From IMG/VR virus record IMGVR_UViG_3300024336_000005, positions 62,001 through 126,000 of that record: 64,000 nucleotides of DNA; one strand, given 5' to 3'. The notes under the pieces are model-generated. The model had not been told where the DNA came from. It was given only the letters and a program-made list of their open reading frames with translations, and did not search any database. This document shows, one piece after another, positions 1 to 53,039 of the stretch; position 1 is the stretch's first letter, and each line of letters begins with the position of its first letter. The translations under genes were made by a program, and so were the position numbers.

Positions 1-6
1 GACGCC

Positions 7-4405: not shown

Positions 4406-4407
4406 GT

Positions 4408-4845: not shown

Positions 4846-4870
4846 TACGATTCGAGATGCGGCCAACTGG

Positions 4871-6609: not shown

Positions 6610-6716
6610 AACCACTAGGTACAAGGCTTTAGCCAACCAAGTGCAAGGCTTCTGGCCAGCCACTAGGTATGTACCATCAGGCCAGTATGTACATATTAGC
6701 CAACCAAGTATGTACC
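6610..6716. repeat. mosaic of short direct repeats
   Basis: CCACTAGGTA x2, TAGCCAACCAAGT x2, GTATGTAC x3, CAAGGCT x2 in an intergenic gap. Confidence 0.7.
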
Positions 6717-6733
6717 TGTAGAACAAGGGGTGA

Positions 6734-7467: not shown

Positions 7468-7501
7468 TGGGCATCTGCTTCTACCTTGAGACGAATGCCT
7501 G

Positions 7502-8268: not shown

Positions 8269-8834
8269 CTGTCTTCACTCGTCGTAGTGTCCACTGGAGT
8301 GGGAAGAGCACGCCTATCGAGGAGCTGCTTAGCTTCGAGATGGACAAGAATGATGGCCGTTTCACTGATGCTGAGAGGAGGAGGATTAAGCTTCTTCAGC
8401 GAGACAAGAAGTGCACCATCTGTGGCTTGGTTCCGACTAAGGCGCTGAATGTGCACTGGGGGCACTCCCATGGTGGCACCAGTCTGCATCTCTTTGGAGA
8501 TGTGAACGGGCGGCTGGAGTGCTTCAACGTAGATCACATCATCCCTAAGGCCTGCGGTGGCAACAACTCCTTCTTCAACTTGCAGCTCACTTGTGAGAGG
8601 TGCAACAGTGAGAAGGGGAACAACTTTGACATGGAGATGGTGCATCCTGAGCGGCTGAAGAGTGGAAGCACTCGACGGGCACACAACGTTCTGGTGCTTC
8701 GACAGAGAGATGAGTTGGCGAAGCAGGTCGCTTCGTTGACTGAGCAGTTGAAAGAGGCCCGTCGGCCTCAAACGTTCCGAGAGGTCCTGGAGAATAAGCT
8801 CCGCCGCCTCATCCCCACTGGTTACTGGAGTTAA
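8265..8834 (+). CDS. HNH endonuclease
   Basis: CTICG...VDHIIPKACGGNNSFFNLQLTCERCNSEKG HNH motif. Confidence 0.85.
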   Translation: MTVFTRRSVHWSGKSTPIEELLSFEMDKNDGRFTDAERRRIKLLQRDKKCTICGLVPTKALNVHWGHSHGGTSLHLFGDVNGRLECFNVDHIIPKACGGNNSFFNLQLTCERCNSEKGNNFDMEMVHPERLKSGSTRRAHNVLVLRQRDELAKQVASLTEQLKEARRPQTFREVLENKLRRLIPTGYWS

Positions 8835-8837
8835 GGA

Positions 8838-9668
8838 ATGCGCATTCGTACTGATCTGTTCTTCGCTTCGAAGGTTGAGTTCAATTTGTTCTGGATTGGA
8901 GACAGTGGGTTCTCCTGTGGGGGTGACACCTTGCGGAAGATCTTCGGCCTCAGCGCTACTGGTTGCGGTGAGTCCGCCCACTGGGAGATGGTCTCCTCGA
9001 AGGGAGCAATGGCACAGTTCACGCTGGGTGTCTGCAAGGGTTGCCTGAACAAGGCGGCACCTCAGGCCGAGACCCGCTACTGGGCGGCTGATATCATCAG
9101 TGCCGTGTGGCACCCCAATCATCGGGATGTGGCCTGTGAGGAGCCCGGTTGTGAGGAGACGATCTCCTACAACAGCAAGGCACATGGCAATGTGTGTGCC
9201 TTGCATGGATGCAAGTACATCCATGGGTATCTGAAGGAGATGTACATCGAGAAGGACTTCCTCGAGACGGAGAAGGAGCTGAAGTTGATCTGGGCAATGT
9301 TCCCGGAGAGTCGTCCTCAATACATCGAGGTCAAGAGCGACCGAGATGTGAGGGACTACATGCTGGTCCATGAGGGTGGCATGGAAGAGACCATCATGGT
9401 GGCTGCCAAGCGGTTGCTCAGCAACCCCGATGATCTGGCACACCACTTCCCTCCCTACCGGGAGCTCCGGGAGCTGGGTCGGACGTGCCTCTTACCGTTG
9501 CACCATCCTCGGGTGGTGTACTTGCAGCGACAGTGCGCCCCGGTCTTGGCGGCCATCCAGAGTGGTGACTTCAAGAGCTTGGCTGGGTTCATTCATGAGC
9601 CTCCCGTTGAGGTGGAGTTCTCCACCTTCGCGGCCTTCAACCCTGCTGATGTCATGGAGATGAAGTAA
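8838..9668 (+). CDS. hypothetical protein, Cys-rich
   Basis: ORF in array. Confidence 0.8.
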   Translation: MRIRTDLFFASKVEFNLFWIGDSGFSCGGDTLRKIFGLSATGCGESAHWEMVSSKGAMAQFTLGVCKGCLNKAAPQAETRYWAADIISAVWHPNHRDVACEEPGCEETISYNSKAHGNVCALHGCKYIHGYLKEMYIEKDFLETEKELKLIWAMFPESRPQYIEVKSDRDVRDYMLVHEGGMEETIMVAAKRLLSNPDDLAHHFPPYRELRELGRTCLLPLHHPRVVYLQRQCAPVLAAIQSGDFKSLAGFIHEPPVEVEFSTFAAFNPADVMEMK

Positions 9669-9669
9669 T

Positions 9670-10170
9670 ATGACCATCGAAGATATCATCCTTGAGAAGG
9701 AGTGGCTCATCAAGACGATGGGCCTGTGTCCTTCCTCAATGCTGACCCTCAAGGAGCTGCAGGCCATCCATGCAGGCCCCCTGGACGAACTCATGAACCA
9801 TGAGAAGGAGTGTGAGAAGCTCGAAGAGCAGGAGGTGGTTGCTGCGGCGGAGCCGGAATGGACGCCCAGTGGGGAGGTGAAGTCCTTCCACGCCCTGTGG
9901 GATTTCTGGGAGATGCCTGAGCACATTATTGAGGGGTGGGAGGATGCTCTCATCTGCCTCCTTCACTGGAAGGAGAGCTTCACTGAATATGGCACTCACA
10001 TGCAGTTGAGGTACGATGTGGGCCAGGATTATTGGAGCACCTCTACTGGAGTGAAGAACAAATCCTGGCGGGTTCGACTCCTTGACCCTGAGGTGGAGTG
10101 GCATTCGGCAGTGAAGGAGGTAGAGGCCGTCTTGGCTTGGTTGGCTGAGAGGGAGCTGATCTCCTTCTAG
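9670..10170 (+). CDS. hypothetical protein
   Basis: ORF in array. Confidence 0.8.
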   Translation: MTIEDIILEKEWLIKTMGLCPSSMLTLKELQAIHAGPLDELMNHEKECEKLEEQEVVAAAEPEWTPSGEVKSFHALWDFWEMPEHIIEGWEDALICLLHWKESFTEYGTHMQLRYDVGQDYWSTSTGVKNKSWRVRLLDPEVEWHSAVKEVEAVLAWLAERELISF

Positions 10171-10399
10171 GAGCTACATACTTAGGCCTCACCACGAATG
10201 TGGTGGGGTCAATAGGATGTAGGTCCGTTGTTCTGGCCCTCTTCCCTTGGAGCCGGCGGAGCCGGCTGTGTTTACTTTGGATAGTTCTGTGAATGTTAGG
10301 AGGACGTGATTGCTGATAGTTGGATGTTCCTGTTCGTTCCCCTGGAAGTGTAAACTTAGCACACCTCTTGAGGAGATGTGCTCAGGGGCTCAGGCCACT

Positions 10400-10495
10400 A
10401 TGGCCAAGCTTAGGAGGAAGAGTGAGAAAGGTAAGAAACCTCCTAAAAGAGGTCAGAAGAATAAGAAGCTGGCATCTCGAAGGAGGTCAGCTTAA
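10400..10495 (+). CDS. small basic peptide
   Basis: MAKLRRKSEKGKK... after AGGGG RBS-like motif. Confidence 0.4.
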   Translation: MAKLRRKSEKGKKPPKRGQKNKKLASRRRSA

Positions 10496-10535
10496 GAGCG
10501 GAGGATTCCACCTTCCGGAGCTCATTCTTTGGCAA

Positions 10536-10808
10536 ATGACTAAAGATGAGAATCTGGTGGTGGATGCTATGGACCTTCCCGTTGCTGCCTTGTGCGCAGC
10601 GGGGTTTTCTCAGTCGGATGCTACTGTCATAAACATGGCAGCCTATGCCCTGTTCTTAGATAAGGATTGGGTGGTGTCGATGGAGGAGTATGAGAGCTTC
10701 CCCTCAACTGTTGCAGTAGCGGAGCTGCTGTGGTTAGAGATGGTTGAAGCTGCATTTGAGGTTGATCGTCAGGTCAGCCTCGCCATGTTGGAACTAGTGA
10801 GGAAGTAA
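10536..10808 (+). CDS. hypothetical protein
   Basis: in-frame ATG at 10536; TAATG overlap with next gene. Confidence 0.6.
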   Translation: MTKDENLVVDAMDLPVAALCAAGFSQSDATVINMAAYALFLDKDWVVSMEEYESFPSTVAVAELLWLEMVEAAFEVDRQVSLAMLELVRK

Positions 10809-11116
10809 TGGGATTGAGAGTTCGTCGGTCAGTGATGGGATACTTTAGGGGAGCCTGTTGGTGCATCTCTCCCATTGTTGGGAACATTCTCGAGACTGCT
10901 GAGGAGGAGGAGCTGCAAGAGATGTATGAAGTACAGTTCTTCACAGAGAACTCGGAGCCTTCCCTCACGGAGGCGATGCGTGCCATGAGGGAAAATGTTG
11001 CTTCCCTCATTCGGTACAAGAAGGTCGCCGTTGGTCCCTTCGAGTGGTGTGCCGAAACCGGGAAGTTCGACGATTGGGGGGACTGGATCCCCCGAAAGCT
11101 GGCTGCAAAAGCGTAG
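10808..11116 (+). CDS. hypothetical protein
   Basis: ORF followed by hairpin and T-tract. Confidence 0.7.
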   Translation: MGLRVRRSVMGYFRGACWCISPIVGNILETAEEEELQEMYEVQFFTENSEPSLTEAMRAMRENVASLIRYKKVAVGPFEWCAETGKFDDWGDWIPRKLAAKA

Positions 11117-11121
11117 CCTTT

Positions 11122-11175
11122 GGAGCCGACGGAGTCGGCGGGGGAACCGGCTTCGCCGGTTGTCTTTTTGTTTGA
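11122..11175 (+). terminator. probable intrinsic terminator
   Basis: GCCGAC-GGA-GTCGGC and AACCGGC-TTC-GCCGGTT hairpins followed by T-rich tract. Confidence 0.6.
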
Positions 11176-11286
11176 CATCTTTTTAGGGTTTTAGGTTGTT
11201 TTCTTCTTTTACTTTCTCTGTGAGAGGGAGTGAGAGAGAGATTTCCCCCTAATTTGACTGAAAGCATAGCACTTTCCTAAAAGGAA

Positions 11287-11955
11287 GTGTTGCTTAGAAA
11301 AGAGGTATTTGTGAAGGGAATCAAGCTGGTTCTTCAGGACGGTCACAAGAAGATTGCGGCCATCAAGGCACTCCGCGCCGCCCTCCCGTTATGGGTGGGA
11401 CTGAAGAGGTGCAAGGAGTACGTCGAGGCGGGGTTTGTTCCCTTTACCTCGATTGAGGGAGTTGACCTCTGTGAACTCCAGAGGGTACTTTGGGGTTACA
11501 AGGTGGCGCTCTACCTTTGCGACGGAGAAAGGGCCACCCTCGGATGGCTCGTGGACCCCGATAACTTCTGGACGTCCTCATCCCTTCGGCTCACCCCCCC
11601 GGAGGGGATGGTGAGCCGGTACAAGGTGAGGGACATCCCGACCAAGCCGCTGACGGTGGAGATTCAGCTGCCTCCGCAACAGCGTCAGGATGTCCTCAAT
11701 CACGTTGATGATTGTACTGAGACCCGGCTGGCCTGGATTGACAGGCAGTTCGAAGAGATTCGATTCGCCGCGAAGTGCGGCGATTGGACCCTCACCTTGA
11801 CGGGCGACTTCCTCATCATCGGCAACGCCCATCTCGAGCCCCTACAGAGGCTGGTGGACAGCTTCTGCGTTCCGGTCGAGGAGCTCATCGGACAGATGGA
11901 GGCCACCATCAAAGACCTCCGGGAGCAGTTGAAGTCGGCAATGCCGACGGCCTAG
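11287..11955 (+). CDS. protein with N-terminal ribosomal protein bL12 C-terminal-domain-like motif
   Basis: KIAAIKALRAAL...GLKRCKEYVEAG resembles the bL12 CTD signature KVAVIKAVR...GLKEAKDLVE. Confidence 0.6.
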   Translation: MLLRKEVFVKGIKLVLQDGHKKIAAIKALRAALPLWVGLKRCKEYVEAGFVPFTSIEGVDLCELQRVLWGYKVALYLCDGERATLGWLVDPDNFWTSSSLRLTPPEGMVSRYKVRDIPTKPLTVEIQLPPQQRQDVLNHVDDCTETRLAWIDRQFEEIRFAAKCGDWTLTLTGDFLIIGNAHLEPLQRLVDSFCVPVEELIGQMEATIKDLREQLKSAMPTA

Positions 11956-11998
11956 TTGTTGTTGTTGAAAGCTTAGTGGAAATAGGAAGGAAGAAAAA

Positions 11999-12445
11999 AT
12001 GAACCAGCCGAACTTCATCGCCCTCACCTCCCGCATCTACCAGGCCAAGGGGCCCAAGGTCTCGACCATCGAGGATGTCAAGACGGGGCATGTGCGCATC
12101 ATGTCCTCGGACGTTGAGCCCGTGGACAGCCGGGATGTGTGGGCCGAGCAGTCCAAGGCCTACGAGGACTACCGCATCACCGTGAAGGCCTCCATCGAGG
12201 AGGAGGTGACCATCGAGGAGGCCAATGCGGACTCCCTCCAGGAGGCCTTGAGCACGGCCATCGCCAATGGCGACGAGGTGATGGCCGAGGGCCTCAAGAC
12301 GGCACTGGAGAACTCTGAGAAGGGCATCGTGGAGCTCAAGGTCTCCGAGGACTTGCTGGTCAAGGCGGAAGCGGAGCGCCTCGCCACCAACGCCATCAAC
12401 ATCTTCGAGCACAAGGTGGCCTGCTTCCAGGCTCTCGTCGGCTAG
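11999..12445 (+). CDS. hypothetical coiled-coil protein
   Basis: ORF with strong codon bias and RBS. Confidence 0.85.
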   Translation: MNQPNFIALTSRIYQAKGPKVSTIEDVKTGHVRIMSSDVEPVDSRDVWAEQSKAYEDYRITVKASIEEEVTIEEANADSLQEALSTAIANGDEVMAEGLKTALENSEKGIVELKVSEDLLVKAEAERLATNAINIFEHKVACFQALVG

Positions 12446-12830
12446 GGCAAGTTCACATTCACCGGAGTAGGAAGATGCTGGACTAGGCGGAGGGAAACCG
12501 CAGAACCTCTTTTACTTTACTTAGATATTAGTTCAAAATAAAGGCGCTGAGACTGTGAATCGCATCAGAGACGACCCTTAGGGGATTGGAGGGCGGCCAG
12601 AGGTCGCCACACTTTTGAATTAAAGTCTTATATGTGACTGGTTGCCGACTCGCCGGAGCAGAGTCGTGAGCTACAAGGCCTCCAATGTTGGAGGTTGGGT
12701 GCGAAGAGGTTGGACGCCTCATAACCGTAGGCCCAGGAACTGTTTCAGTTCGTGTGAACGAAGTGAACGGGGAACCGAGTAGATGGTATTCATTGTTGCC
12801 CTACCGAAGACGTGTGAGGGCACTTGAAGA
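12446..12830 (+). ncRNA. putative large structured ncRNA (copy A of a two-member family)
   Basis: hairpin-rich intergenic gap sharing ordered motifs with 19655-20110. Confidence 0.45.
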
Positions 12831-12842
12831 AAGGATAAGTCC

Positions 12843-13640
12843 ATGTTCGATTTGCAGAACGAGAAGACCGCCGTTGAGACCACCGCCCCGTTCCGGAAGG
12901 TGCTCGCCACCGGCGAGGTCCAGCCCGTGTCGTTCGCGGGATTCGTCGAGAAGACGGAGGATGGTGGCTACCAGTTGCAGGAGACGCTGGACATCGAGAC
13001 CTGCATCGGGGTGCTGGGCTTCGCCGCTGCGGTGAAGTTCAACCAGCACACCAACGACGATGGCACGACCACCATCCGGGTGTCGGCCATCCAGGAGGGT
13101 AACACGAGCAAGAAGCGGCAGCGTGGTGACAGCCAGCGCACGAGCAAGGGGGCGAGTGAGTTCGGTCTCGGGACGTGGGTCTTCGCGACTCGGCTCGAGG
13201 TGCCGGGGCTGGATGTCGGCTCCATCCACACCTGCTACGGGACCATGGGCGAGGCGACGGTCTCCACCCCCAATGGCCCGGCCTTCACCGCCTCCAAGCC
13301 CGCCTTCGCGGGTGCGTTCGAGCAGGAGGTGACCAAGGCGGTGCAGCTGATGCTCTCGTCCTTCGTGGGCGCCGCCAGTGGTGGTGAGAGCATCGTGACC
13401 AACGACGAGGGGCTCATGGACACCCTCCGTTGGTTGCAGCGTGTGGTGCCGAACAAGTTCGGTCGTCTGGTCTTCCAGGGGGCCGCCTTCGAGGGGGCAA
13501 CCAACACCAGCCGCGTGAAGGCCGTCATCAACGGCAAGGAGGTCCAGGTGGCGCAGTCCACCAAGGGCTCCAACCGCGTCAAGACCGCCTCCAAGGCCAC
13601 CGCCTCGGACCTCGACGCCCTCGCGGCGCTCGAGGCCTAA
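12843..13640 (+). CDS. hypothetical protein
   Basis: ORF with strong codon bias, RBS aaagga. Confidence 0.85.
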   Translation: MFDLQNEKTAVETTAPFRKVLATGEVQPVSFAGFVEKTEDGGYQLQETLDIETCIGVLGFAAAVKFNQHTNDDGTTTIRVSAIQEGNTSKKRQRGDSQRTSKGASEFGLGTWVFATRLEVPGLDVGSIHTCYGTMGEATVSTPNGPAFTASKPAFAGAFEQEVTKAVQLMLSSFVGAASGGESIVTNDEGLMDTLRWLQRVVPNKFGRLVFQGAAFEGATNTSRVKAVINGKEVQVAQSTKGSNRVKTASKATASDLDALAALEA

Positions 13641-13809
13641 TCCCACCTCCCTGAAGTCCGGTGAGTCGTTCCCTACGGGTTGAGCGACTCCCGGCAACCT
13701 CCCCTTGTTTATCTTTGTTGTTGATATAGGTGTGTATGAACGTAGTGTACGACTGTTGTTGTACCCTATGGGCATGCACACCTGTGTATGTTGGCAGACA
13801 GGAGTGTGT

Positions 13810-14379
13810 ATGAAGATTGCCATTATTGGCACCGCTGGTAGGAGCAAAGCTCCGCAGCATCGGATGACACGGAAATTGTATGGCAGCATGTTGGATGCTG
13901 CCTGGCAGATGATGTTGAAGAACTGTGAGGATTGGAGTGATGTGACACTTCAGTCTGGTGGAGCCGCGTGGGCTGACCATGTGGCTGTGAGCGCCTATAA
14001 GCTGGCATTGGTGTGTGGAAAGCCCTTCAAGGGGCTGAACCTGTACCTGCCGGCCCCCTTTGATGGGGACAAGTACGCCGCCACTAAGGCGGGTGGTATC
14101 TCCAACTACTATCATCGGCTTTTCACGCAGGCCGTTGGAACAGACACTCTTGTGGGGTTGGCTGATGTCATGCAGCTGCCCGGTGTGATGGTGGATGTTG
14201 GAGTGGGGTTCCATCAGCGGAACCTCGAAGTTGGGAAGGCTGACGTCCTGTTGGCCTTTACCTGGGGCGAAGGCAGCGGCCCCGCCGACGGTGGCACGAA
14301 GCACTGTTGGAAAAATTCTCATGCGCCGACGAAGGTGCACTTCAAGCTCTCTGAGCTGAACGGACAGTCCGATGAGTGA
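13810..14379 (+). CDS. SLOG/YspA-like Rossmann nucleotide-binding protein
   Basis: MKIAIIGTAGR, SGGAAWADH, RN...AFTWG...GGT motifs. Confidence 0.6.
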   Translation: MKIAIIGTAGRSKAPQHRMTRKLYGSMLDAAWQMMLKNCEDWSDVTLQSGGAAWADHVAVSAYKLALVCGKPFKGLNLYLPAPFDGDKYAATKAGGISNYYHRLFTQAVGTDTLVGLADVMQLPGVMVDVGVGFHQRNLEVGKADVLLAFTWGEGSGPADGGTKHCWKNSHAPTKVHFKLSELNGQSDE

Positions 14380-17300
14380 TACTCTTTTTGGTAAGAACGC
14401 TGACGAGAAGTCCCTCCTCGAGGAGGCAGGCGACGGTGTTGTGGACAACAGCACCGTCATCGACCACGACAAGAAGACTGACCGCATTCTCGCCGATACG
14501 GCCGTGGTTCGCGGTGCCGCCATGTTTGTCCAGACGGACGACTTGTGGCACCACGGGGTCAGTCAGCACGGGCTGGCCCGTTCGAACACCCGCTACGGGG
14601 AGACCACCCAGTTGGTCTTGGTCCCGGAGGGTTCCGATGGCTGTGAGACCATCATCATCCACAGTCTCCGTGGTGGAACTCAGGAGGTCACCGTTAAGCG
14701 CCGGGCCCTGCCGATGCAGGAGGAGGTGGTCGAGCGAGTCCTCGCCGCCACCGATGAGGCACTTGCGCCCTACATGCGGAAGTACTCCTGTCGCACGCGG
14801 GAGCAGTTGGTGGGGAGGTGGCCTGCGCAAGGCCGTGGCCCCATCTACATCGACAGTGTCGCCACGCGCTTGACGCACAACGACTGGGTCGATGACCTGG
14901 GAGACGTGCTGAGCGATGAGCTGCTGCGCTCGATGCAGCGGTACATGAAGGCCATGAGACAGGACATCCCGCCGAGTCAGGATGATGTGGAAATCATCCA
15001 CTGGGCCATGGGCGAGGCTGGCTTGAAGCCCGTTGAGCTCTACCAGATGTTGCTCATGCAGCAAGAGACCCGACAGCGGCTGCTGGTCCTTCTCGGTGAG
15101 GACGAGTTGAAGCGGGACTCCGCCCTCAACTCGTACGACCCTTCTCCGGCCATCCCGGACGGGTGGGGCTTGCCCTCCTCCTTGGAGGAGCCGATGAAGT
15201 GCAAGAAGGCGTGGAATGCCTTCCTCAAGTCCGGTGGCGAGGTGGCGCTCTCGTTGGACCACATCGTCTTCGATGACGGCGATGGCTTCGACCGGGTGAC
15301 CATTGAGGGCCTTGCGGCCATCAAGATGACCCGAGATGGAGTGAACCGTCTGGTCAAGGCTCACAGTGGCATCACGCTGCTGGAGACTACGGCCAACAAT
15401 GGTCAGTTCCCGCCGTCCCATCGGGAGTTGACCGCCGCAGTGGTGGCCGTTCACGAGAAGTGGGCGGACTCCTTCGAAGCGTGGCAGGAGCGACGTACGC
15501 CCAGTGTCCGCTGGGTGGCTCTGGGCAACCTCACGGGTGGCATCGGTGGCGGTGGGGGTGACCTCAACGGCACCGATGAGTTCGACGTCGACGCGGACAT
15601 CCGTCCGAAGCCCGGCTTCCAGGACATCGACCCGGTGGAGTTGAAGAACCCGGAGGAGGCCTGGCTCAAGAAGCAGGTCATGGGGATGTCCACTCCGGAC
15701 CCCATCACTCAGTTCTTTGGGGACACCGGGTCGTTCGCTTCGGACCTACCCATTGGCCGTCGGAAGATTGGGGAGGAAGTGTACCTCCCCGGAGGCCACC
15801 CGTTGGCTCAGGGCATCATGGACATCATGGCGGCTGCCAATGGCCAGCGGGACTACGTCTCCTTGGGTCTGACGGATGACGCCTCCTCGATGGTTCGCAT
15901 GGAGTGGCCGAAGAACCTCGTGGAGACCTCCACGATGATGATGCCGACCATGGCGGGCGACAAGGTGGAGGTGGAGGTGTTGGTCTTCCACCCCGTCTAT
16001 GAGGGGGTGGACTTGTTCAACCTCATCCTCAGCACCGATTGGGTGGACCACGCGGGCCAGGTGAAGGACTTCTTCGCCGACTACACTGTCAAGGTGAATG
16101 GCGTCAAGCAGTGGGGGCTCAACCAGCAGGTGAGCCCTGGGCAGAAGGTGATGGAGGCGTCCTATACCGACGACGAGGGCCAGTACTGGTTCAAGTCGGT
16201 GGACCTCGAGATTGAGCCCGGTGCTCGGGTGGCCTTCGACGCGGGCATGCCGGTGGGGGAGGTCATCGAGACCGTGCGGGACGGTCAGACCTTCTGCCAG
16301 GCCCTCGTTCGGGTCTGGCCGGCGAAGGTCAATGTCGGCTACCGTCATCGGTTGCACGAGATTGATGCGAATGGCGAGGCCGTTCCCATCGACGAGAACG
16401 ACCCTCTGTTGGCCATCTACGGCATCGAGCAGCAGGGAGATGTGCTCTGGCACGTGATGTTCAAGAGCCGCTTGGACTTCCTCATCACCAGCCTGGGCTG
16501 CACCAAGGTGCCGGTCCTGGCCCTGGTGGAGACGGGCGAGGAGGCCATCCCGATGGTGGTCGAGCAGTACGCGAAGGTGCACTTCCCGGCGCTGTTCAAC
16601 TGGCTCTCGCTGCTGAGCGAGAACTACCACGAGGCCGTCTCCGACATGACCGAGTGGTCGGAGGGGGACGGTGAGGACCTGCTGCGGCTGGTCACCGAGG
16701 AACTGATGACCATCCAGACGCTGGCCTTGGAGCTCATCGTCGAGGATAACATCGGTTGCGTGGCCGACTACATGGACGACGTCAACGTGGCATTGGGCGA
16801 TGCTTGCATCGGAACCTCCAGCAAGTTCCCTGACCGGAACGGCAACGAGACGAGCGCCTATGGTGCCCTCCTCGTTGGGAACACGGGGCGTCTCTACCCC
16901 CTGTTGGACAGCCTGAAGCCCGGTCCGCAGAACGTGTTCGACCTCCCGGAGGAGGCGCACACGAACATCACCAAGATGTTCAAGGCCATGGGCTACCTGT
17001 ACAACGACCGGAGGCCCTTGGGTGCCGACAGGTTGCAGCAGATGGTGGGAGAGCAGTTCTTCTTCACCCATCCCCTGCGTCGTGCTCCGCGTCGTGTGAA
17101 CGACCGCTGGCACCGGGCGGCGAAGGCCGTGACGTACACCAAGGACCCGAGCCTGTTCAGCTCGGGCATGGTCGGCAACTTGGTGAGCCAGTTGAGCGCC
17201 GCGATGTTCCCCATCAACGATGGTGGGCTGAACTTGTTCCACCCCTCGGAGGAGCACATGAAGGCGGCCAACTGGGACTATGAGAAGGCGATGCGTCTCC

Positions 17301-17761
17301 ACCTCATCGAAATCTTCCCGGAGGACCTCTGGGGTCGGACGGCGGCGAGTCGCGCTCACCGCTACCTGACGCGGTTCAACCAGGACCGTGGGTTCTTCAA
17401 GGAGGACGCCAAGGCGCTGCGTTGGCTCATCTGCAACATCTTCAACTTCGAGGACCGCACCTTGGTCCATCCCACCTTGTCGGGTGGGGAGGCCATCAAG
17501 GCCTTCGGTAGGGGTGTGTTGGTTGAGAGTTTTGTGAAGGGTTGGGTGAACGAGAGGAACGAGGACAAGAAGGCACAGCGCTTGACCGCCCTGGACCGTC
17601 GAGTCGCGCTCCTCACCCCCACGCCGCCCCTCCTCTTCCGTTTCTTGGCGCTCTTGGAGAAGAACGTCGAGTTGGAGGCCTTCAACCGGGCCTTGATGCA
17701 GGCCGCCCCGAAGTTGGGCCCCTTGGGGGTCCAGCACATCCGCAACCGTCAGAACGGTTGA
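14372..17761 (+). CDS. large hypothetical protein, possibly a highly diverged RNA polymerase beta-like subunit
   Basis: 1129 codons; only weak motif echoes (GLAR..YG..PEG..IHSL, SMQR). The ORF is certain, the function is not. Confidence 0.8.
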   Translation: MSDTLFGKNADEKSLLEEAGDGVVDNSTVIDHDKKTDRILADTAVVRGAAMFVQTDDLWHHGVSQHGLARSNTRYGETTQLVLVPEGSDGCETIIIHSLRGGTQEVTVKRRALPMQEEVVERVLAATDEALAPYMRKYSCRTREQLVGRWPAQGRGPIYIDSVATRLTHNDWVDDLGDVLSDELLRSMQRYMKAMRQDIPPSQDDVEIIHWAMGEAGLKPVELYQMLLMQQETRQRLLVLLGEDELKRDSALNSYDPSPAIPDGWGLPSSLEEPMKCKKAWNAFLKSGGEVALSLDHIVFDDGDGFDRVTIEGLAAIKMTRDGVNRLVKAHSGITLLETTANNGQFPPSHRELTAAVVAVHEKWADSFEAWQERRTPSVRWVALGNLTGGIGGGGGDLNGTDEFDVDADIRPKPGFQDIDPVELKNPEEAWLKKQVMGMSTPDPITQFFGDTGSFASDLPIGRRKIGEEVYLPGGHPLAQGIMDIMAAANGQRDYVSLGLTDDASSMVRMEWPKNLVETSTMMMPTMAGDKVEVEVLVFHPVYEGVDLFNLILSTDWVDHAGQVKDFFADYTVKVNGVKQWGLNQQVSPGQKVMEASYTDDEGQYWFKSVDLEIEPGARVAFDAGMPVGEVIETVRDGQTFCQALVRVWPAKVNVGYRHRLHEIDANGEAVPIDENDPLLAIYGIEQQGDVLWHVMFKSRLDFLITSLGCTKVPVLALVETGEEAIPMVVEQYAKVHFPALFNWLSLLSENYHEAVSDMTEWSEGDGEDLLRLVTEELMTIQTLALELIVEDNIGCVADYMDDVNVALGDACIGTSSKFPDRNGNETSAYGALLVGNTGRLYPLLDSLKPGPQNVFDLPEEAHTNITKMFKAMGYLYNDRRPLGADRLQQMVGEQFFFTHPLRRAPRRVNDRWHRAAKAVTYTKDPSLFSSGMVGNLVSQLSAAMFPINDGGLNLFHPSEEHMKAANWDYEKAMRLHLIEIFPEDLWGRTAASRAHRYLTRFNQDRGFFKEDAKALRWLICNIFNFEDRTLVHPTLSGGEAIKAFGRGVLVESFVKGWVNERNEDKKAQRLTALDRRVALLTPTPPLLFRFLALLEKNVELEAFNRALMQAAPKLGPLGVQHIRNRQNG

Positions 17762-18209
17762 GCGAGGTGGGTGGTTGATTGAGAGGTTGGTGGATTAGGT
17801 GAGATGAAGGTTCTCAGCTAGGGGCATCGGCCCCTTAGCTGGGCCTAGCCTAGTCGCCATTTCTTCCATCGTTGGAGTATCTTCAGCTTTGGGTTTTGGT
17901 TTTGAAAGGTTGGTTGTAGGTAATAAAGGTTAGAAAAAAATTCTTAAGGCAGCAGAAGCCGAACTGAGTGTGTCGGTACTGCCGTCTTTGAACCCTGGCC
18001 GGGGTTAAGGCAAAAAGGATCCCGGAACAAGCATAAGGGATCCGAAAAGTGACCGGTCCTGAGGTGGGTCGATGAGGGTTGAGCCAGGAGGGAGTAAGTT
18101 CTCTCGATAGTCTGGCTGTGTAGGGACCTTAGGTTGCTGTTGCGCTGCTAACGTAGAACCTTGGGGAATTAAAGAAACCCGTGAAGGTGCATTTCTCAAA
18201 GAGGCTGTC

Positions 18210-20449: not shown

Positions 20450-20649
20450 TGGATGCCGTCGACATATCGCTCTCCCTCTTGATTGCTGCAGCATTTGTCT
20501 TCCTTGGTTTTGGGATGGGGGCTGCCCATGAAGGCACCGCCATCAAAGAGGGATGGTGTGAGGCAAATAGTGCAAAGATTGAGAGCAGTCTTTGTGTCCA
20601 CGACAATGGTGTCGACAAGGTTGTGATTCCCTTTCCTGATTGGATGTGA
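20446..20649 (+). CDS. small membrane/secreted protein
   Basis: overlapping start, TM segment. Confidence 0.65.
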   Translation: MMDAVDISLSLLIAAAFVFLGFGMGAAHEGTAIKEGWCEANSAKIESSLCVHDNGVDKVVIPFPDWM

Positions 20650-20650
20650 T

Positions 20651-21100
20651 ATGTCTCGTGTAATCATTCTTCGCGGACTTCCCGGCAGCGGGAAGAGTTC
20701 GCTCTGTACGAACTTTGATGTGGAGGCGGTTGTTTGTAGCGCCGATGACTTCTTCTACGATGAGGAGGACAACTACATCTTCGATGGCTCTAAGCTGGCG
20801 CTGGCCCATCAGGCTTGCCAGGAGAAGTTCTCGACTGCCCTCCTGGATGGCAGTCGACTCATTATCGTGGACAACACCAACACGCAGCACTGGGAGATGA
20901 AGCCCTACCTGGACATGGCCTATCTGGCCGATGCTCGGGTCACGGTCATCTCCGCCTTCGATGGAGGTTGCACCGATGAGGAGCTGGCCGAGCGGAACAC
21001 GCATGGCGTCCCTCAGGATTCCATCGCGGGCATGAGGGCTCGGTTCGAGCACGACTGGAAGGCCCATGACGCGCGTCCTCCATGGGAGCGGGGCAAGTGA
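20651..21100 (+). CDS. P-loop (AAA_33-type) polynucleotide kinase-like protein
   Basis: GLPGSGKS Walker A, SADDFF, IIVDNTN, RNTHGVP. Confidence 0.85.
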   Translation: MSRVIILRGLPGSGKSSLCTNFDVEAVVCSADDFFYDEEDNYIFDGSKLALAHQACQEKFSTALLDGSRLIIVDNTNTQHWEMKPYLDMAYLADARVTVISAFDGGCTDEELAERNTHGVPQDSIAGMRARFEHDWKAHDARPPWERGK

Positions 21101-34784: not shown

Positions 34785-36146
34785 ATGTACCAAGCAATTG
34801 TTGCCAACATTCACACCCGTCCACATCCGGGAGCTGATCGAATTCAGCTAGGAACTGTATGTGGCCATCAGGTTGTATGCGGGCTTGACATTGCTGATGG
34901 TACTCTCGGTGTGTTCTTTCCTTGCGATGGCCAGCTAAGTCATGACTTCTGTGTGGCCAATGATGAGTACCCTCGGCTTGATGAACAGGGGAAGAAGGTC
35001 GGTGGCGGATTCATCAATCCTAAGAACCGTCGCGTAAAGGCACAAAGCTTTCGTGGTGAAAAGTCGGATGGCTACTGGGTTCCAATGGATAAGCTCATTA
35101 AGTGGGCAAATCATGTTTGGCGCGAGGATGACAAGGGAGACCATGTCCTCTTGTCCAACCGTGTGCAGAGCCTTGTAGAAGGTGACACCTTTGATTCCGT
35201 TGGCGATGTGCCTTTGTGTAACAAGTATGTAACTGAGAAGACCCTTAAGGCTCTTCAGAATCAGGCCAAGCAGGCTCGCAAGACTCATACTCAGTTCGCT
35301 CAGCATATTGATACCAAGCAGTTCCGATACAACATTGGAAACATCCCGGAGGGTTCCATTGTATGGATATCTGAAAAGCTTCACGGTACTAGCGGTCGCT
35401 ATGGGTACGTTCAAGCTCTTCGTGAGCTCGGTGGCCGTTTTAATGCTTTTGTTCGCAGGGCTTTTGATTGGTGCGCTGATAAGCTTGGTCTTGATGTAAG
35501 CCCTAAGTATGAACATGTTATGGGCTCACGAAGGGTTGAGCTCTCTGCTCAGTCAGAAGGGTTTTACGGCTCGATAGATTTCCGTGCAAATGTAGCAAAC
35601 AAGTTGAAGGGAAATCTCCTCAAGGGTGAGTGCATTTATGGAGAGCTAGTGGGTTGGACTGGTCCTGATTCTTTGATCATGGGCCGCCACTCAACCAAGA
35701 AGCTCGGCAAGGAGCTTCGCAAGCAGTACGGAGAAGAGGTCACCTATACTTATGGACAGCCAAACGGTTGTTCTGAGTTCTTCGTTTATCGAATCACTCG
35801 TGTTGGCCCAGATGGTCAGACGATTGAGCTCGGTGAGCGTGAGATGCGGGCAAGGGCGAGGGTCCTCGGCTTCAAGACTCCAGAGCTCTTTGCGGGGCCG
35901 ATGGTAGTTCACGACTATGCTGATGATAAGTGGGTCGATGGTGGCAAGACGCTCATGCAGGTCGTGGAAGCCTACCTAAATGGACCATCGATTGAAGACT
36001 CACGACATCCTCGAGAGGGCGTCGTGATTAGGGTTGACAGGCCTGACGGGACTACCATCTGGCTCAAGGACAAGAACCATCCGTTCAAGGTAATGGAGGG
36101 TATCGCTAAGGATTCCGGCGAAGCAGACATGGAAGAAAGCTCATGA
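34785..36146 (+). CDS. ATP-dependent RNA ligase, Rnl2/DRB0094-like with N-terminal OB fold
   Basis: HPGADRI, EKLHGTS (motif I), YGELVG, FFVYRI, REGVVIR, LKDKN. Confidence 0.85.
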   Translation: MYQAIVANIHTRPHPGADRIQLGTVCGHQVVCGLDIADGTLGVFFPCDGQLSHDFCVANDEYPRLDEQGKKVGGGFINPKNRRVKAQSFRGEKSDGYWVPMDKLIKWANHVWREDDKGDHVLLSNRVQSLVEGDTFDSVGDVPLCNKYVTEKTLKALQNQAKQARKTHTQFAQHIDTKQFRYNIGNIPEGSIVWISEKLHGTSGRYGYVQALRELGGRFNAFVRRAFDWCADKLGLDVSPKYEHVMGSRRVELSAQSEGFYGSIDFRANVANKLKGNLLKGECIYGELVGWTGPDSLIMGRHSTKKLGKELRKQYGEEVTYTYGQPNGCSEFFVYRITRVGPDGQTIELGEREMRARARVLGFKTPELFAGPMVVHDYADDKWVDGGKTLMQVVEAYLNGPSIEDSRHPREGVVIRVDRPDGTTIWLKDKNHPFKVMEGIAKDSGEADMEESS

Positions 36147-40772: not shown

Positions 40773-42416
40773 ATGAACTACGGTAAGACTGTTAGCAACG
40801 CTATCAACAATGGTCCAGTTTCTCAGCCTATCATCGGTAGGCCCGAGATGGTAAAGAACAGCACTGAGGGCTTTGTCTTCAACACCACTTCTGAGGCAGC
40901 GCTTGAGCGCTTCCTCATTCTTGGCACTGAAGGCGGCACTTACTATGCCAGCGAGAGCCGAGCTACAGTTGATGCGGCAAAGAATGTCATCGAGATGGCT
41001 GTTGCTGGCAACGTAGATGTAGTCAGTACCATCATCAAGGTCGCTACTGCTCGTCCCTCTCGTGCGCCAAAGATGGAGCCTTCCTTGTTTGCTCTTGCAG
41101 TTTGTACCGCAAAGGGCACCCCCGAGGTAAAAGCTAAGGCGCTCAGCGCGCTGAGCGCGGTTTGCCGTATCCCCACTCATCTGTTTACCTTTCTTCAGGC
41201 CCACAAGGATCTGGGAGGCAAGACCGGTGGGCGCAGCTTCCAGCGAGCCCTACAGAATTGGTATCTTGAGAAGGATCCCTCTAAGCTGGCTTATCAGGTT
41301 GTGAAGTATCAGGGGAGGAATGGCTGGACTCACCGTGATGTTCTTCGGCTTGCCCGCCCTAAGGCTCAGACCCCTGAGCAGAACTCTATTTTGAGTTGGG
41401 CTGTGAATGGTTCGCTGCCTCTGGCAGTAAGTTCTGAAGCGGGTGCTTATCTTGTGGCGGCGAATGAGCTGCTGCGAGGGGAGCCGACGAAGCAGCGTGC
41501 AATCAACTTGATTGAGTCTCATGGGTTCACCCATGAGATGGTTCCGACTAAGCTTCAGAAGGACCCTGATATCTGGGCAGCTTTGCTTCCCCGCATGCCT
41601 ATCAATGCAATGGTTCGCAACCTTGGTCGGATGACTGCCAATGGTCTGATTGTTCCATTCAGTGCCACAACTCAGAGCGTGGTGGAGAAGCTTGAGAATG
41701 TGGATGCCCTTCGCAAGAGCCGCATCCATCCGCTCAACGTTTACGTGGCCTTGCGTACCTATCAGCAGGGCAAGGGCACTCGAGGTTCGTTGACTTGGCG
41801 TCCTGATGCTCAGATCTTGAGCGCACTAGAAGGAGCATTCTACAATGCTTTCGGGAATGTAGAACCGACTGGTAAGCGCTTCATGGTGGGCCTGGATGTA
41901 AGCGGCAGCATGGGTGGATTCTATGGCTACGGCTATAACAGTACTGTGAACCAGACTGGCCTTATGGGGATTCCTGGGTTTACGCCTTATGAGGCAGAAA
42001 CCCTTATGTCCCTTTTGGTTGCAAAGACTGAGAAGCAGACCTTCTTTGGTGGGTTTTCAGACAACTTCACTCCCCTTGCTATCAACTCCCGTGATAACAT
42101 GAGCTCGGCTCTTCAGAAGATCCGATCACTCCGCATGGGTTCCACTAGGATTGCTGCTCCGATGGAGTATGCCACCAAGAACAGGATTCCGGTGGATTGC
42201 TTCCAGATCTACACCGACAATGAAGTGAACATGGGCGGACATCCTTGTCAGACCCTTGAGAAGTATCGTCAGGCTACTGGCATCAATGCGGCCATGGTCG
42301 TATGCGCTATGACCTCTACGAATTTCACTGTGGCCGACCCGAAGGATCCGAAGCAGCTTGATGTTGTTGGATTTGACACGGCAGTGCCAGCTTTGATTCG
42401 ACAGCTTTTGGTGTAA
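40773..42416 (+). CDS. rsr: Ro60/Rsr TROVE-domain RNA-binding protein
   Basis: LERFLILGTEGGTYY, KYQGRNGWTHRDVLRLARP, VRNLGRMT, IHP, vWA MIDAS DVSGSM, YTDNE, DVVGFD. Confidence 0.97.
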   Translation: MNYGKTVSNAINNGPVSQPIIGRPEMVKNSTEGFVFNTTSEAALERFLILGTEGGTYYASESRATVDAAKNVIEMAVAGNVDVVSTIIKVATARPSRAPKMEPSLFALAVCTAKGTPEVKAKALSALSAVCRIPTHLFTFLQAHKDLGGKTGGRSFQRALQNWYLEKDPSKLAYQVVKYQGRNGWTHRDVLRLARPKAQTPEQNSILSWAVNGSLPLAVSSEAGAYLVAANELLRGEPTKQRAINLIESHGFTHEMVPTKLQKDPDIWAALLPRMPINAMVRNLGRMTANGLIVPFSATTQSVVEKLENVDALRKSRIHPLNVYVALRTYQQGKGTRGSLTWRPDAQILSALEGAFYNAFGNVEPTGKRFMVGLDVSGSMGGFYGYGYNSTVNQTGLMGIPGFTPYEAETLMSLLVAKTEKQTFFGGFSDNFTPLAINSRDNMSSALQKIRSLRMGSTRIAAPMEYATKNRIPVDCFQIYTDNEVNMGGHPCQTLEKYRQATGINAAMVVCAMTSTNFTVADPKDPKQLDVVGFDTAVPALIRQLLV

Positions 42417-44379: not shown

Positions 44380-44455
44380 GGCCTTATAGGATAATGGCTA
44401 ATCCACCCGATTCTCATTCGGGATATGGCGGGTTCGACTCCCCCTAAGGTCACCA
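44380..44455 (+). tRNA. trnE: tRNA-Glu(CUC)
   Basis: CCCGA-TTCTCAT-TCGGG, ACCA. Confidence 0.88.
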
Positions 44456-46172: not shown

Positions 46173-46244
46173 ACGCCCTTAGCCAAATGGTAAGGCAGCG
46201 GATTCCAAACCCGTGATTTGTAGGTTCGATCCCTACAGGGCGTG
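46173..46244 (+). tRNA. trnW: tRNA-Trp(CCA), intact copy inside the split gene
   Basis: ACGCCCT/AGGGCGT, GCGGA-TTCCAAA-CCCGT, G73. Confidence 0.93.
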
Positions 46245-46246
46245 CA

Positions 46247-46827: not shown

Positions 46828-46856
46828 CGGTCAGGGTTCAAGTCCTTGCTGCCGTG
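46828..46856 (+). pseudogene. 3' half of split tRNA-Trp
   Basis: CAGGG-TTCAAGT-CCTTG T-arm, CTGCCGT-G acceptor strand. Confidence 0.85.
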
Positions 46857-47777: not shown

Positions 47778-48488
47778 CTACTTGAGCCATTTGCGAATAG
47801 CATTATCAGTAACTCCGTAATGTCTTCCTGTTTTAGAATATCCCCATAGCTTTATTTGATCCAATAGAACTTCCTTGGAGGGTCTATTCAAAACCTTACG
47901 TCTTGAGTGGTCTGCCTGCCTTGCACAAGATCTACACCTAGCGGCTGTTGCTGAAATTTTTTCTTGACAGTCTTGACAATGATTTTGCTTCTTTTTGTGC
48001 GAAACATTTCGTCCAGCAAAGGTGGCCGTCTGGCTATTGCAATTAGGACAAAGAAAGCGCAAATTCTCTAATCTATGATCATTATTAATTCCATTGATGT
48101 GATCAAGAATTAATACAAGTAATTCTTCATTCCAAATATTGTTTTGCTTGCACAAGAGGCATTCATAAGGAATTACGCCCTCTTTTAGGATGCGTTGCTT
48201 AAGAGTGCCACGGCTGTAGGATGAATTCTTAATCATGTATTCCTCAAGGGGCTTGCCTCTTGAGGATGAAACCAGCCTTCTTGCTTCATTGTTTGTAAGA
48301 TCAATCCTAATTAATTCTTCTTGTAGGCAATATTTAATTGCTAATTCCTTTAGGATTCTGTATGTAGACCCACAGCGATTGGCAATGTTTAGGATCTCTA
48401 AAGCCTGGGCTCTCGATTCTGCTTGTTGTATTGCAGAAATAAATTCTATTTTGGGGACTTTATACAGGGGATGACTTTTCTTTCTCAT
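47778..48488 (-). CDS. HNH homing endonuclease (antisense, AT-rich)
   Basis: LILDHINGINNDHRLENLRFLCPNCNSQ; start set at MRKKSH with AGGAG RBS. Confidence 0.9.
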   Translation of the reverse strand: MRKKSHPLYKVPKIEFISAIQQAESRAQALEILNIANRCGSTYRILKELAIKYCLQEELIRIDLTNNEARRLVSSSRGKPLEEYMIKNSSYSRGTLKQRILKEGVIPYECLLCKQNNIWNEELLVLILDHINGINNDHRLENLRFLCPNCNSQTATFAGRNVSHKKKQNHCQDCQEKISATAARCRSCARQADHSRRKVLNRPSKEVLLDQIKLWGYSKTGRHYGVTDNAIRKWLK

Positions 48489-48500
48489 GATACTCCTTGA

Positions 48501-48583
48501 TCGGGGGTGATGAAACTGGCATATATGCTCGACTCTGAATCGAGTGCTTCGGCGTGAGGGTTCGAATCCCTCCTCCCGATCCA
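48501..48583 (+). tRNA. tRNA with CUG (Gln) anticodon on a class II (Leu/Ser-like) body
   Basis: CTCGA-CTCTGAA-TCGAG, variable arm TGCTTCGGCGT, U73, CCA. Confidence 0.85.
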
Positions 48584-48596
48584 ATGCATATTTGTT

Positions 48597-48625
48597 ATTA
48601 TATGGCAAAGTACAAATAATAGCAA
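48597..48625 (-). promoter_or_regulatory. sigma70-type promoter for antisense HNH
   Basis: TTGCTA-17bp-TATAAT on minus strand. Confidence 0.7.
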
Positions 48626-49686: not shown

Positions 49687-49763
49687 GGGGGAATCGTCAA
49701 GTGGTTTAAGACACCTGCTTTACACGCAGGCATGCGCAGGTTCGACTCCTGCTTCCCCTACCA
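49687..49763 (+). tRNA. trnV: tRNA-Val(UAC)
   Basis: CCTGC-TTTACAC-GCAGG, ACCA. Confidence 0.92.
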
Positions 49764-49985: not shown

Positions 49986-50189
49986 ATGAGTGGTAAGATA
50001 ACTAAGAGTGCATATGTTCAGCTAATAAAAGAAAATATTGCATGGTTAAAGACCATGCCTAGGACCCTAGAGCGAAACCATATTATGCTTATAGTTGAAA
50101 AGTCTATTGACTTTTACTACCCCACTTCCCATCCCCATTTTGAAAGTGTTCAACCTCATGGCAAGTTGGGCACAGGATCTTTAGATTAG
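49986..50189 (+). CDS. small hypothetical protein (3' end overlaps HNH tail)
   Basis: AGGAGG RBS. Confidence 0.7.
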   Translation: MSGKITKSAYVQLIKENIAWLKTMPRTLERNHIMLIVEKSIDFYYPTSHPHFESVQPHGKLGTGSLD

Positions 50190-50628
50190 ATAAAGAACTA
50201 TTTGCTCTGTCACGATCTTTATGGTGGACATGAAGAACCTCTGGCACTTGGTTGAAGCCACATTCAGAGCACTGATGGGGCAAATGCTTGAAAGCTAACT
50301 TGCGATACTCTACTCCTCCCTTCCAAGAGCCATGATTTTCATTGCTTCGGAAATGGGTATTAGAACATCCGTAAGAGCAGGTTGTTGTTTCTTTTGGGTG
50401 TCCCTTTAGTGTTTCAAATTCTTTTGAGCATACAGGGCATTCCTTAGTTACCTTAAGATATTTTCTTCTATCTCTAGAGCTTTTGTACCTATCGAAATGA
50501 GAGGTGTCAAAAGGCTCGCAATCTTTTTTAGCCTTTCTTGTTCCAGATCCATTTAATGGATATCCGATATATCTACAAATATCTGAATAAGAATTGAAGG
50601 TACTGATAAGGTTTTGTGTAAGTTTCAT
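50104..50628 (-). CDS. HNH homing endonuclease, paralog of 46247-46795
   Basis: shared KEFETLKGHPKE..CS and HH.(N/D)RD...NL.ILCPTCH. Confidence 0.9.
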   Translation of the reverse strand: MKLTQNLISTFNSYSDICRYIGYPLNGSGTRKAKKDCEPFDTSHFDRYKSSRDRRKYLKVTKECPVCSKEFETLKGHPKETTTCSYGCSNTHFRSNENHGSWKGGVEYRKLAFKHLPHQCSECGFNQVPEVLHVHHKDRDRANSSLSNLKILCPTCHEVEHFQNGDGKWGSKSQ

Positions 50629-50640
50629 TTTTTCTCCTAT

Positions 50641-50719
50641 CTGCGCGTAGCTCAGTCTGGTTTAGAGTAACCGCCTTGGAAGCGGTAAGTCGTTGGTTCA
50701 AATCCAACCGTGCAGACCA
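50641..50719 (+). tRNA. trnP: tRNA-Pro(UGG)
   Basis: ACCGC-CTTGGAA-GCGGT, ACCA. Confidence 0.93.
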
Positions 50720-50737
50720 AAATATTCAATATTCCTT

Positions 50738-50765
50738 ATTATAACACAGACTTTTGTCTTGTCAA
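50738..50765 (-). promoter_or_regulatory. consensus sigma70 promoter for antisense HNH
   Basis: TTGACA-16bp-TATAAT with TG extended -10 on minus strand. Confidence 0.8.
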
Positions 50766-50780: not shown

Positions 50781-50868
50781 CTAGCGAGCGGGCGGTGGAC
50801 GCCCAACCGTGCTGTACAGCGGTGGTGCTTTGATGCACAACTGGGTTCGATTCCTAGGCGCTAGACCA
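50781..50868 (+). tRNA. Tyr-like class II tRNA with 8-nt anticodon loop
   Basis: ACCGT-GCTGTACA-GCGGT, GTGC..GCAC arm, 5-bp D stem, ACCA. Confidence 0.65.
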
Positions 50869-52638: not shown

Positions 52639-52705
52639 AGCTGAGAGGAAAGCCCCATATTCTAGGAAGCCTTGACAGTTCGGAGAGACGAACGCTTTAT
52701 CTTAT

Positions 52706-53039
52706 CCAGGAGGTGGGCTTAGAAGCAGCCATCCTTTAAAGAGTGGGCATAGATGAAGCTTAACCGATTGATCTTATCTAATCATGACACGGATAGGAGA
52801 AGCTTAAGTTAGCACCTCTCAATAAATTCGAATTGGACCCAGGTTGGCTTCCTGGTTGGCCTTTACGAGAGAGTCTTGTAAGAAAGCGGGAAGAGACTTA
52901 GTCAGTCTTATAAAGAGAGCGAAACCGAACGCAACTCTTTGTTCTATTTTAGAACTGGTGTGAATCCTATGACGGGATGTATTTGGTTAACAAACGAGAG
53001 AATTGACTCTGCCCTCCTTTTAGCGTAATAGCACACTGG
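52706..53039 (+). ncRNA. 23S rRNA H43-H44 (uL11-binding GTPase centre) mimic with 278-nt insertion
   Basis: CCAGGAGGTGGGCTTAGAAGCAGCCATCCTTTAAAGAGT [insert 52745-53022] GCGTAATAGCACACTGG; no other rRNA sequence nearby. Confidence 0.85.

Follow-up and report, generated by a model that had tools for sequence, protein, structure and literature searches.

Homing endonucleases of phage tRNA clusters have been studied in few cases, chiefly SegB of phage T4 and the enzymes of phage T5. Phages such as lambda and 186 are in turn known for convergent-promoter interference and cis-antisense RNA control. SegB is a free-standing homing endonuclease encoded in the T4 tRNA cluster, whose homing has been shown experimentally; it recognises tRNA-gene sequence, and its expression has been proposed to be limited by tRNA processing (PMC2330249). 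The same paper gives F-TflI and F-TflII, as well as F-TflIV, as site-specific HNH endonucleases of the T5 tRNA region (its ref. 18), and describes I-TevI and Aeh1 MobE, for which cis hairpins hide the ribosome-binding site in early transcripts (PMC2330249). Here we analysed a 64,000-nt stretch of viral DNA (the window), which corresponds to bases 62001-126000 of the 204,008-bp IMG/VR record IMGVR_UViG_3300024336_000005, rated complete. We focused on HNH-Pro, an HNH endonuclease gene that sits at the 5' edge of a tRNA-Pro gene and is inverted relative to an all-plus tRNA array. With a probability of roughly 60%, we consider it a putative free-standing homing endonuclease of a clade associated with tRNA-Pro(UGG), present here in inverted form, whose anti-tRNA leader would result from landing site and orientation and not be a purpose-built sensor.

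The inverted HNH gene, its predicted promoter and leader

The record contains 32 tRNA genes, all on the plus strand, across 48 kb, and every gene call in the 6.5 kb around HNH-Pro is likewise on the plus strand, the HNH genes excepted. The genome has five HNH-domain open reading frames (ORFs), three of which are found on the minus strand inside the tRNA array (HNH-Pro, HNH-Gln and HNH-Trp; Table 1). HNH-Pro is intergenic, being located between tRNA-Pro and the ORF at 49986-50189, outside any intron or intein. A minus-strand ORF at 20543-21067 was considered as a fourth inverted gene and rejected, as it overlaps a plausible plus-strand P-loop gene and has no family match.

The HNH-Pro protein matches Pfam PF01844 (23.9 bits; cut-off 21.4) as well as PHROG HNH families, and its profile matches in the Protein Data Bank are the HNH domains of IscB and McrA. 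No GIY-YIG catalytic domain was found in it; its family matches are all HNH. Residues H135, H136, N148, H157 and H161, together with C120, C123 and C153, are invariant in an alignment of 18 homologs. An AlphaFold2 model of the protein has a predicted local distance difference test (pLDDT) score of 88. The best Foldseek match of the C-terminal domain is the Gme HNH nicking endonuclease (4h9d), with a probability of 0.98 and an E-value of only 0.15 because the domain comprises ~65 residues. The exact protein recurs in numerous assemblies of this phage. Four that come from different samples do not differ over 6.5 kb, HNH-Pro and its promoter included, and thus offer no population variation by which promoter conservation could be gauged.

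An initial annotation of the window had described a perfect consensus promoter on the minus strand, followed by an antisense tRNA-Pro, an AGGAG ribosome-binding site and the ATG of the HNH gene. Both the promoter and this order of elements were confirmed (Table 1). The predicted promoter is the sole 12/12 match to the sigma70 consensus on both strands of the genome; block shuffles gave an expectation of 0.07 such sites per genome and of 1.3e-4 for three 100-nt zones upstream of minus-strand HNH genes. It occupies the 61-nt spacer separating tRNA-Pro from the next tRNA-like gene, to which ARAGORN assigned a 4-base anticodon (tgta) and the Rfam tRNA model gave no match at E<=1; this neighbour may be either an unusual Tyr-like tRNA of class II or a degenerate copy. 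From the position of the promoter, transcription of HNH-Pro is inferred to start near 50731. A consensus scan of 50629-50737, which covers the gap between tRNA-Pro and the ATG as well as the tRNA itself, found no alternative site of at least 9/12. Because the gap is only 12 nt long and no other such site occurs in this interval, the HNH-Pro mRNA almost certainly has to begin beyond tRNA-Pro.

The tRNA-Pro complement would account for ~79 nt of the ~103-nt leader, and the complementarity covers the full 79 nt, stopping 2 nt from the Shine-Dalgarno sequence. The earlier claim of a leader complementary to a tRNA was in this respect upheld; the predicted anti-tRNA leader is well supported as sequence and is largely forced by geometry. 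tRNA-Pro folds as a cloverleaf and its complement as a mirror cloverleaf, and the Shine-Dalgarno sequence is largely open in the folded leader. We did not see the leader hide the ribosome-binding site by its own fold, and its stability was no greater than that of shuffled sequences (z = -1.3). Since the leader alone leaves the Shine-Dalgarno sequence largely open, any control would act in trans or through convergent transcription. A terminator-like hairpin past the stop codon is a candidate that may mark the end of the minus-strand unit.

A nuclease lineage beside tRNA-Pro(UGG) genes

The next relatives of HNH-Pro share 66, 50, 46 and 39% identity with it, and their contigs have quite dissimilar gene neighbourhoods: one carries UDG, ribonucleotide reductase and endonuclease VII, another rIIB together with an HD domain, and a third a metallophosphatase. 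We surveyed 80 IMG/VR loci retrieved with a profile built from 18 homologs and placed them in a quick maximum-likelihood tree. Both HNH-Pro and its window paralog HNH-Trp fell inside a 27-member clade with a Shimodaira-Hasegawa-like approximate likelihood-ratio test (SH-aLRT) support of 97. All but one of the clade members (26/27) adjoin a tRNA, and 21/27 directly adjoin tRNA-Pro(UGG), which makes up 12.8% of all tRNAs in the surveyed loci. Relative to the HNH gene, tRNA-Pro(UGG) lies upstream in antisense in five members, upstream in sense in seven (gaps of 50-88 nt) and downstream in sense in nine; these nine show an overlap of 10-24 nt between HNH stop codon and tRNA 5' end. Of two further clades, a small separate one is likewise sense-downstream of tRNA-Pro, and the other is arranged head-to-head with tRNA-Ala(UGC). 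The family of HNH-Gln, phrog_10822, has more than 4,000 members, mostly located just 3' of a tRNA-Gln gene; the nearest upstream tRNA is tRNA-Gln in 19/41 cases, against a background of 12%.

Because the clade members track tRNA-Pro(UGG) and the HNH-Gln family tracks tRNA-Gln, these HNH genes are, judged by their genomic placement, nuclease lineages tied to particular tRNA genes, and the window copies are inverted variants. Adjacency to tRNA-Pro is conserved in any orientation, and the antisense leader therefore looks like the result of landing site and inversion rather than a selected feature. Amber-reading tRNAs with a CUA anticodon were also observed adjoining tRNA-Pro or facing HNH genes in other phage arrays (L012 2304-2377, L013 238-311, L099 and L116).

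The same layout had initially been reported at 48488-48625, ahead of HNH-Gln. All of its elements are present there, but the promoter is weaker (10/12). The tRNA-Gln(CUG) of this layout carries a long variable arm, an unusual trait in a Gln tRNA, and tRNAs of the same kind (83-85 nt in all) are found beside homologous HNH genes in other phages (L108/L126 1330-1414). HNH-Trp, which had been called a close paralog of HNH-Pro, is homologous to it, although with 52% identity over 134 aa (E 4e-48) the description is somewhat generous. Its geometry differs in that the tRNA abuts the stop codon, tail to tail, and not the start. Upstream of the HNH-Trp ATG there is also an orphan T-arm motif in antisense (46832-46848).

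Five unrelated phages carry the head-to-head arrangement with tRNA-Pro(UGG), namely that of the window and those represented by loci L007, L012, L014 and L016. The distance between the HNH start and the antisense tRNA 5' end is 8-21 nt in 5/5 cases. The HNH gene is opposite to every neighbouring gene call in the window and in L007, L012 and L014 (several calls each); L016, a 1.4-kb contig, has one short flanking call that is opposite to HNH, as are all of its tRNAs. For each of these five loci, we scanned the 70 nt beyond the antisense tRNA and 12 nt into it (82-nt scan windows) for promoters. The best sigma70 scores were 12 with a TG motif in the window, 11 in L016 (TTGAAA-16-TATAAT), 11 in L014 (TTGACA-17-TATATT) and 9 with a TG motif in L007, while L012 had none. 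A sigma70-like promoter is thus predicted just past the antisense tRNA in 4/5 loci, with 11-12 of 12 positions matched in 3/5. Among random 82-nt windows drawn from these loci, 0.28% scored at least 11, which gives a binomial P of ~2e-7 for 3/5. When all 15 head-to-head loci of both families were considered, 6/15 scored at least 9.5, compared with a background of 1.9%. The -10 elements of the four loci with promoters end 18, 0, 4 and -1 nt from the tRNA edge, which would place transcript starts at the tRNA 3' end or slightly beyond it. These promoters are not homologous to one another. Each appears to have been gained or retained independently, in the closest free spacer, and this speaks for their being in use.

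Comparison of the window with L016 at the DNA level showed ~70% identity from the tRNA 5' edge through the ORF, stopping at the stop codon, and background-level identity in the tRNA, in the promoter and past the stop codon. Because the homology is confined to the gap and the ORF, the mobile block would consist of the ribosome-binding site and the ORF. We therefore rejected long-range movement of the tRNA with the HNH gene for this pair, in which the tRNA is outside the homologous block. The earlier suggestion that the tRNA travels with the element fails here, but holds at short range in the species Eneladusvirus BF, where the tRNA-Pro alleles change with the gene.

A blastn search of cultured phages returned matches only to the tRNA. 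Distant homologs in cultured jumbo phages also follow tRNA-Pro(UGG), in Serratia phage BF, Erwinia phages pEa_SNUABM_49 and pEa_SNUABM_12 and Xanthomonas phage XbC2. Within Eneladusvirus BF, phages pEa_SNUABM_19, 50, 44 and 47 do not carry the HNH gene, and the flanks of the two alleles are 98-99% identical. The allele without HNH contains three tRNA-Pro genes and a tRNA-Val. In the allele with HNH, the gene is accompanied by a small ORF, another tRNA-Pro allele, a pseudo-tRNA-Pro and a T-arm fragment, and the third tRNA-Pro and the tRNA-Val of its counterpart are missing. To judge from these alignments, the polymorphism is a classic signature of homing with co-conversion of flanks.

Expression and competing readings

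If HNH-Pro is an inverted homing endonuclease gene whose leader follows from its position, host RNA polymerase would start near 50731, copy the tRNA-Pro complement as a leader of ~100 nt and read on into the ribosome-binding site and then the nuclease gene, with a possible end at the hairpin past the stop codon. There is no room for a plus-strand promoter belonging to tRNA-Pro itself, and the consensus scan found no plus-strand site of at least 9/12 within the HNH-Pro gene; for these reasons, array transcripts would have to cross the gene in antisense. As the whole gene would thus lie antisense inside the array unit, tRNA-Pro would not be its sole complementary partner, and the nuclease message would be complementary to the array precursor over its full length and to tRNA-Pro in the leader. 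Polymerase collision would damp nuclease expression, as would pairing of the nuclease message with the array precursor, and perhaps also with tRNA-Pro, into a duplex. Nuclease production would fall mainly in periods before strong array transcription or outside it. The enzyme would probably serve to cut tRNA-Pro loci in co-infecting relatives without the gene and thereby to insert a copy of itself, in the manner of T4 SegB. Where relatives are sense-oriented, processing of the tRNA 5' end would sever the message at the HNH stop codon, an idea also put forward for SegB, and the entanglement of nuclease expression with tRNA biogenesis may be a general theme.

Several observations weigh against this account. 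The use of sigma70 here is an assumption, and the consensus may not be that of the host. The terminator-like hairpin is weak, and L012 and most of the tRNA-Ala head-to-head loci lack a strong promoter match. No relative of the window phage without the HNH gene was found in IMG/VR via HNH itself or via the neighbouring 139-aa protein, and for this reason the insertion in the window phage is deduced from other phages. Parts of the phage were found in two seawater metatranscriptomes, as unstranded contigs at a depth of 2-9. One contig spans 50565-50715, including the ATG and most of the tRNA, and fits either strand or DNA carry-over; it ends at 50715 and not near 50731, a position that no contig reaches. 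A search for a phage sigma factor or T7-type polymerase detected none and was uninformative, as its PF00940 control matched nowhere.

The same leader could instead pair with abundant mature tRNA-Pro, which would block translation or draw RNase III and provide built-in repression or timing, with the tRNA as part of the mobile unit. This had been the initial proposal, and we now regard it as unlikely. The extent of the complementarity and its end so near the Shine-Dalgarno sequence would suit such a device, as would the recurrence of the layout in five independent phages with promoters whose position would put the start at the tRNA edge or just past it, and the co-variation of tRNA-Pro alleles with the gene in Eneladusvirus BF. 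The overlap of HNH stop codon and tRNA 5' end in the sense relatives likewise suggests that tRNA coupling could be a family theme, along the lines of the SegB discussion (PMC2330249). However, what the family keeps is adjacency and not antisense orientation, and between the window and L016 both the tRNA and the promoter lack homology. Since mature tRNAs carry modifications and fold tightly, their pairing with complements is slow. A more elaborate version combines isoacceptor-specific HNH lineages (Pro-UGG, Gln and Ala-UGC) with an inverted gene that recruits a host-type promoter and a putative anti-tRNA leader that works as a true switch; host polymerase would bring about nuclease synthesis at the onset of infection, and duplex formation with RNase III cleavage would end it once tRNA-Pro or its precursor accumulates. 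We consider this combination equally doubtful.

It is also conceivable, if improbable, that the promoter-like site is unused in the real host, for example because that host has another promoter type, and that HNH-Pro is silent, decaying or expressed by rare read-through. Besides the question of the host, the scarcity of sigma70 sites in this phage (three of at least 11/12 in 204 kb) and RNA contigs that stop short of the predicted start would agree with this. Against it stand a 12/12 match with TGn exactly upstream of a minus-strand gene, for which the expectation is near 1e-4, the same placement in independent phages, and an ORF that is intact, retains all catalytic residues and is identical in four assemblies from different samples. 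The very strength of the predicted promoter, aimed head-on into the array, and the presence of two such units in one array could alternatively indicate that an antisense RNA is its main product and acts to control tRNA-Pro or to prevent array read-through, with HNH as a passenger. This is very hard to reconcile with a conserved, intact ORF directly downstream that has a good ribosome-binding site, with a promoter that is present only where an inverted HNH gene needs one, and with sense-oriented relatives that have no such antisense unit. Finally, strict pairing with one isoacceptor, in a phage that has an RNA ligase and other RNA-repair-like genes, could suggest that HNH-Pro is a tRNA partner and not a homing enzyme, such as a nuclease acting on the host tRNA-Pro or its gene for which the phage tRNA is a resistant replacement. 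This seems highly improbable, since the HNH fold and the nearest structures are those of DNA nucleases, the presence/absence polymorphism with replaced flanks is a homing signature, and SegB and the T5 nucleases provide precedents.

Features of the array and comparison with described systems

Table 1. Features of the HNH-Pro locus, the other inverted HNH genes and related elements (window positions unless stated otherwise)
Feature	Position	Strand	Details
HNH-Pro, HNH endonuclease gene	50628-50104	-	Intact, 174 aa; ATG at 50628; N-terminal helical domain, Cys zinc ribbon, C-terminal beta-beta-alpha-metal motif
Predicted sigma70-type promoter	50765-50738	-	TTGACA 50765-50760, 16-nt spacer, TATAAT 50743-50738, TGn at -15/-14; 12/12
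tRNA-Pro(UGG)	50641-50719	+	Encoded CCA; ARAGORN; Rfam tRNA 65 bits
Gap from tRNA-Pro 5' edge to ATG	50629-50640	-	12 nt; Shine-Dalgarno AGGAG at 50638-50634
Terminator-like hairpin	50040-50058	-	7-bp stem, weak T run; 46 nt past HNH-Pro stop, inside plus-strand ORF 49986-50189; consensus scan only
tRNA-like gene	50781-50868	+	88 nt, ends in CCA; bounds promoter spacer on far side
Second promoter-like site	48597-48625	-	TTGCTA-17-TATAAT; 10/12
tRNA-Gln(CUG)	48501-48583	+	83 nt, long variable arm; ARAGORN; Rfam 43 bits; between second promoter and HNH-Gln
HNH-Gln, HNH endonuclease gene	48488-47778	-	236 aa; phrog_10822; ATG 48488, preceded by AAGGAG
HNH-Trp, HNH-Pro paralog	46795-46247	-	182 aa; stop codon 1 nt from 3' end of tRNA-Trp (46173-46245, +)
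Orphan T-arm motifs	24463, 28147, 28958, 46832, 47378, 47710, 48635, 49176, 52095, 54423, 59270, 63787; genome coordinate 129021 (beyond window)	+
Weak RF04354 matches	46173-46245, 49687-49761, 44380-44453	-	Rfam
Eneladusvirus BF alleles compared	L177 1090-2237 vs L184 1091-1405		L177, Serratia phage BF; L184, Erwinia phage pEa_SNUABM_19

Other elements were observed in and around the tRNA array. The base composition steps from 59-65% G+C over much of window positions 1-18000 (parts at 53-57%) to 43-51% across the tRNA array (22000-64000). An RNA ligase (phrog_968), a phrog_850 'RNA-binding protein' and a P-loop kinase-like ORF are encoded on the plus strand in or near the array (34785-36146, 40773-42416 and 20651-21100), and are consistent with an RNA or tRNA repair module. 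Thirteen orphan T-arm motifs, each on the plus strand, fall outside the called tRNAs. After several of them comes an acceptor-like strand with CCA, and some directly precede a gene start. They may be tRNA remnants from recombination, unrecognised tRNAs or tRNA-like processing signals. A 66-nt element with its own closing stem (52694-52759, plus strand) contains a 35-nt, near letter-for-letter match to the GTPase-associated centre of 23S rRNA, in the universally conserved region of helices 43-44 that forms the L11/L10 binding site. It scored 21-25 bits against the Rfam large subunit (LSU) rRNA models (E 2e-4), under the gathering score, and may be a phage-encoded rRNA-fragment mimic or decoy. 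The Rfam family RF04354 (plastid ycf2 5' untranslated region, 5'UTR) gives weak matches, at 23-31 bits and below threshold, to three tRNAs on their antisense strand; this curated 5'UTR family thus resembles antisense tRNA.

The literature that we searched does not describe HNH lineages specific for one isoacceptor, nor an inverted arrangement that recurs and makes an anti-tRNA leader unavoidable. Such lineages suggest an influence on which tRNA alleles phages inherit. This would be relevant to phage tRNAs, which are known to counter tRNA-cutting host defences, a point on which work on SegB with Septu and on PARIS bears. The inverted copies also offer a natural test of whether a leader that is the exact complement of a tRNA senses that tRNA or is a by-product of geometry, and either answer would aid the annotation of many minus-strand HNH genes in metagenomic tRNA arrays.

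Among described systems, SegB resembles HNH-Pro in being a nuclease gene embedded among phage tRNA genes, with expression thought to be restrained via entanglement with tRNA processing. Its target lies inside tRNA genes and it drives preferential inheritance of the tRNA region, which we propose as a further likeness. The two differ in that SegB is a GIY-YIG enzyme and HNH-Pro an HNH enzyme; SegB is co-directional with the tRNAs and has neither a nearby promoter nor an antisense tRNA leader; and SegB recognises a universal T-loop motif, whereas the HNH-Pro clade tracks a single isoacceptor. The T5 F-Tfl enzymes share with HNH-Pro the HNH type and the position inside a phage tRNA cluster, and a lowering of their expression through processing of the primary transcript has been proposed (PMC2330249); the orientation and promoter arrangement of HNH-Pro are not reported for them in the text covered here. 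T5 phages were absent from our tblastn matches, and the F-Tfl enzymes thus have no close relationship to HNH-Pro detectable by that search. I-TevI and MobE, as presented in the same paper, are alike in that RNA-level devices at the 5' end of the message keep nuclease output low or delayed; the HNH-Pro leader differs in leaving the ribosome-binding site unhidden, so that any control would operate in trans or by convergent transcription. As in lambda and 186, a strong predicted promoter faces an opposing unit and fully complementary transcripts are possible, but here one partner would be a structured, processed tRNA or array precursor and the regulated gene a selfish nuclease. HNH-Pro is therefore best filed under the known homing endonucleases of phage tRNA clusters, with SegB and the T5 F-Tfl enzymes, as a variant.
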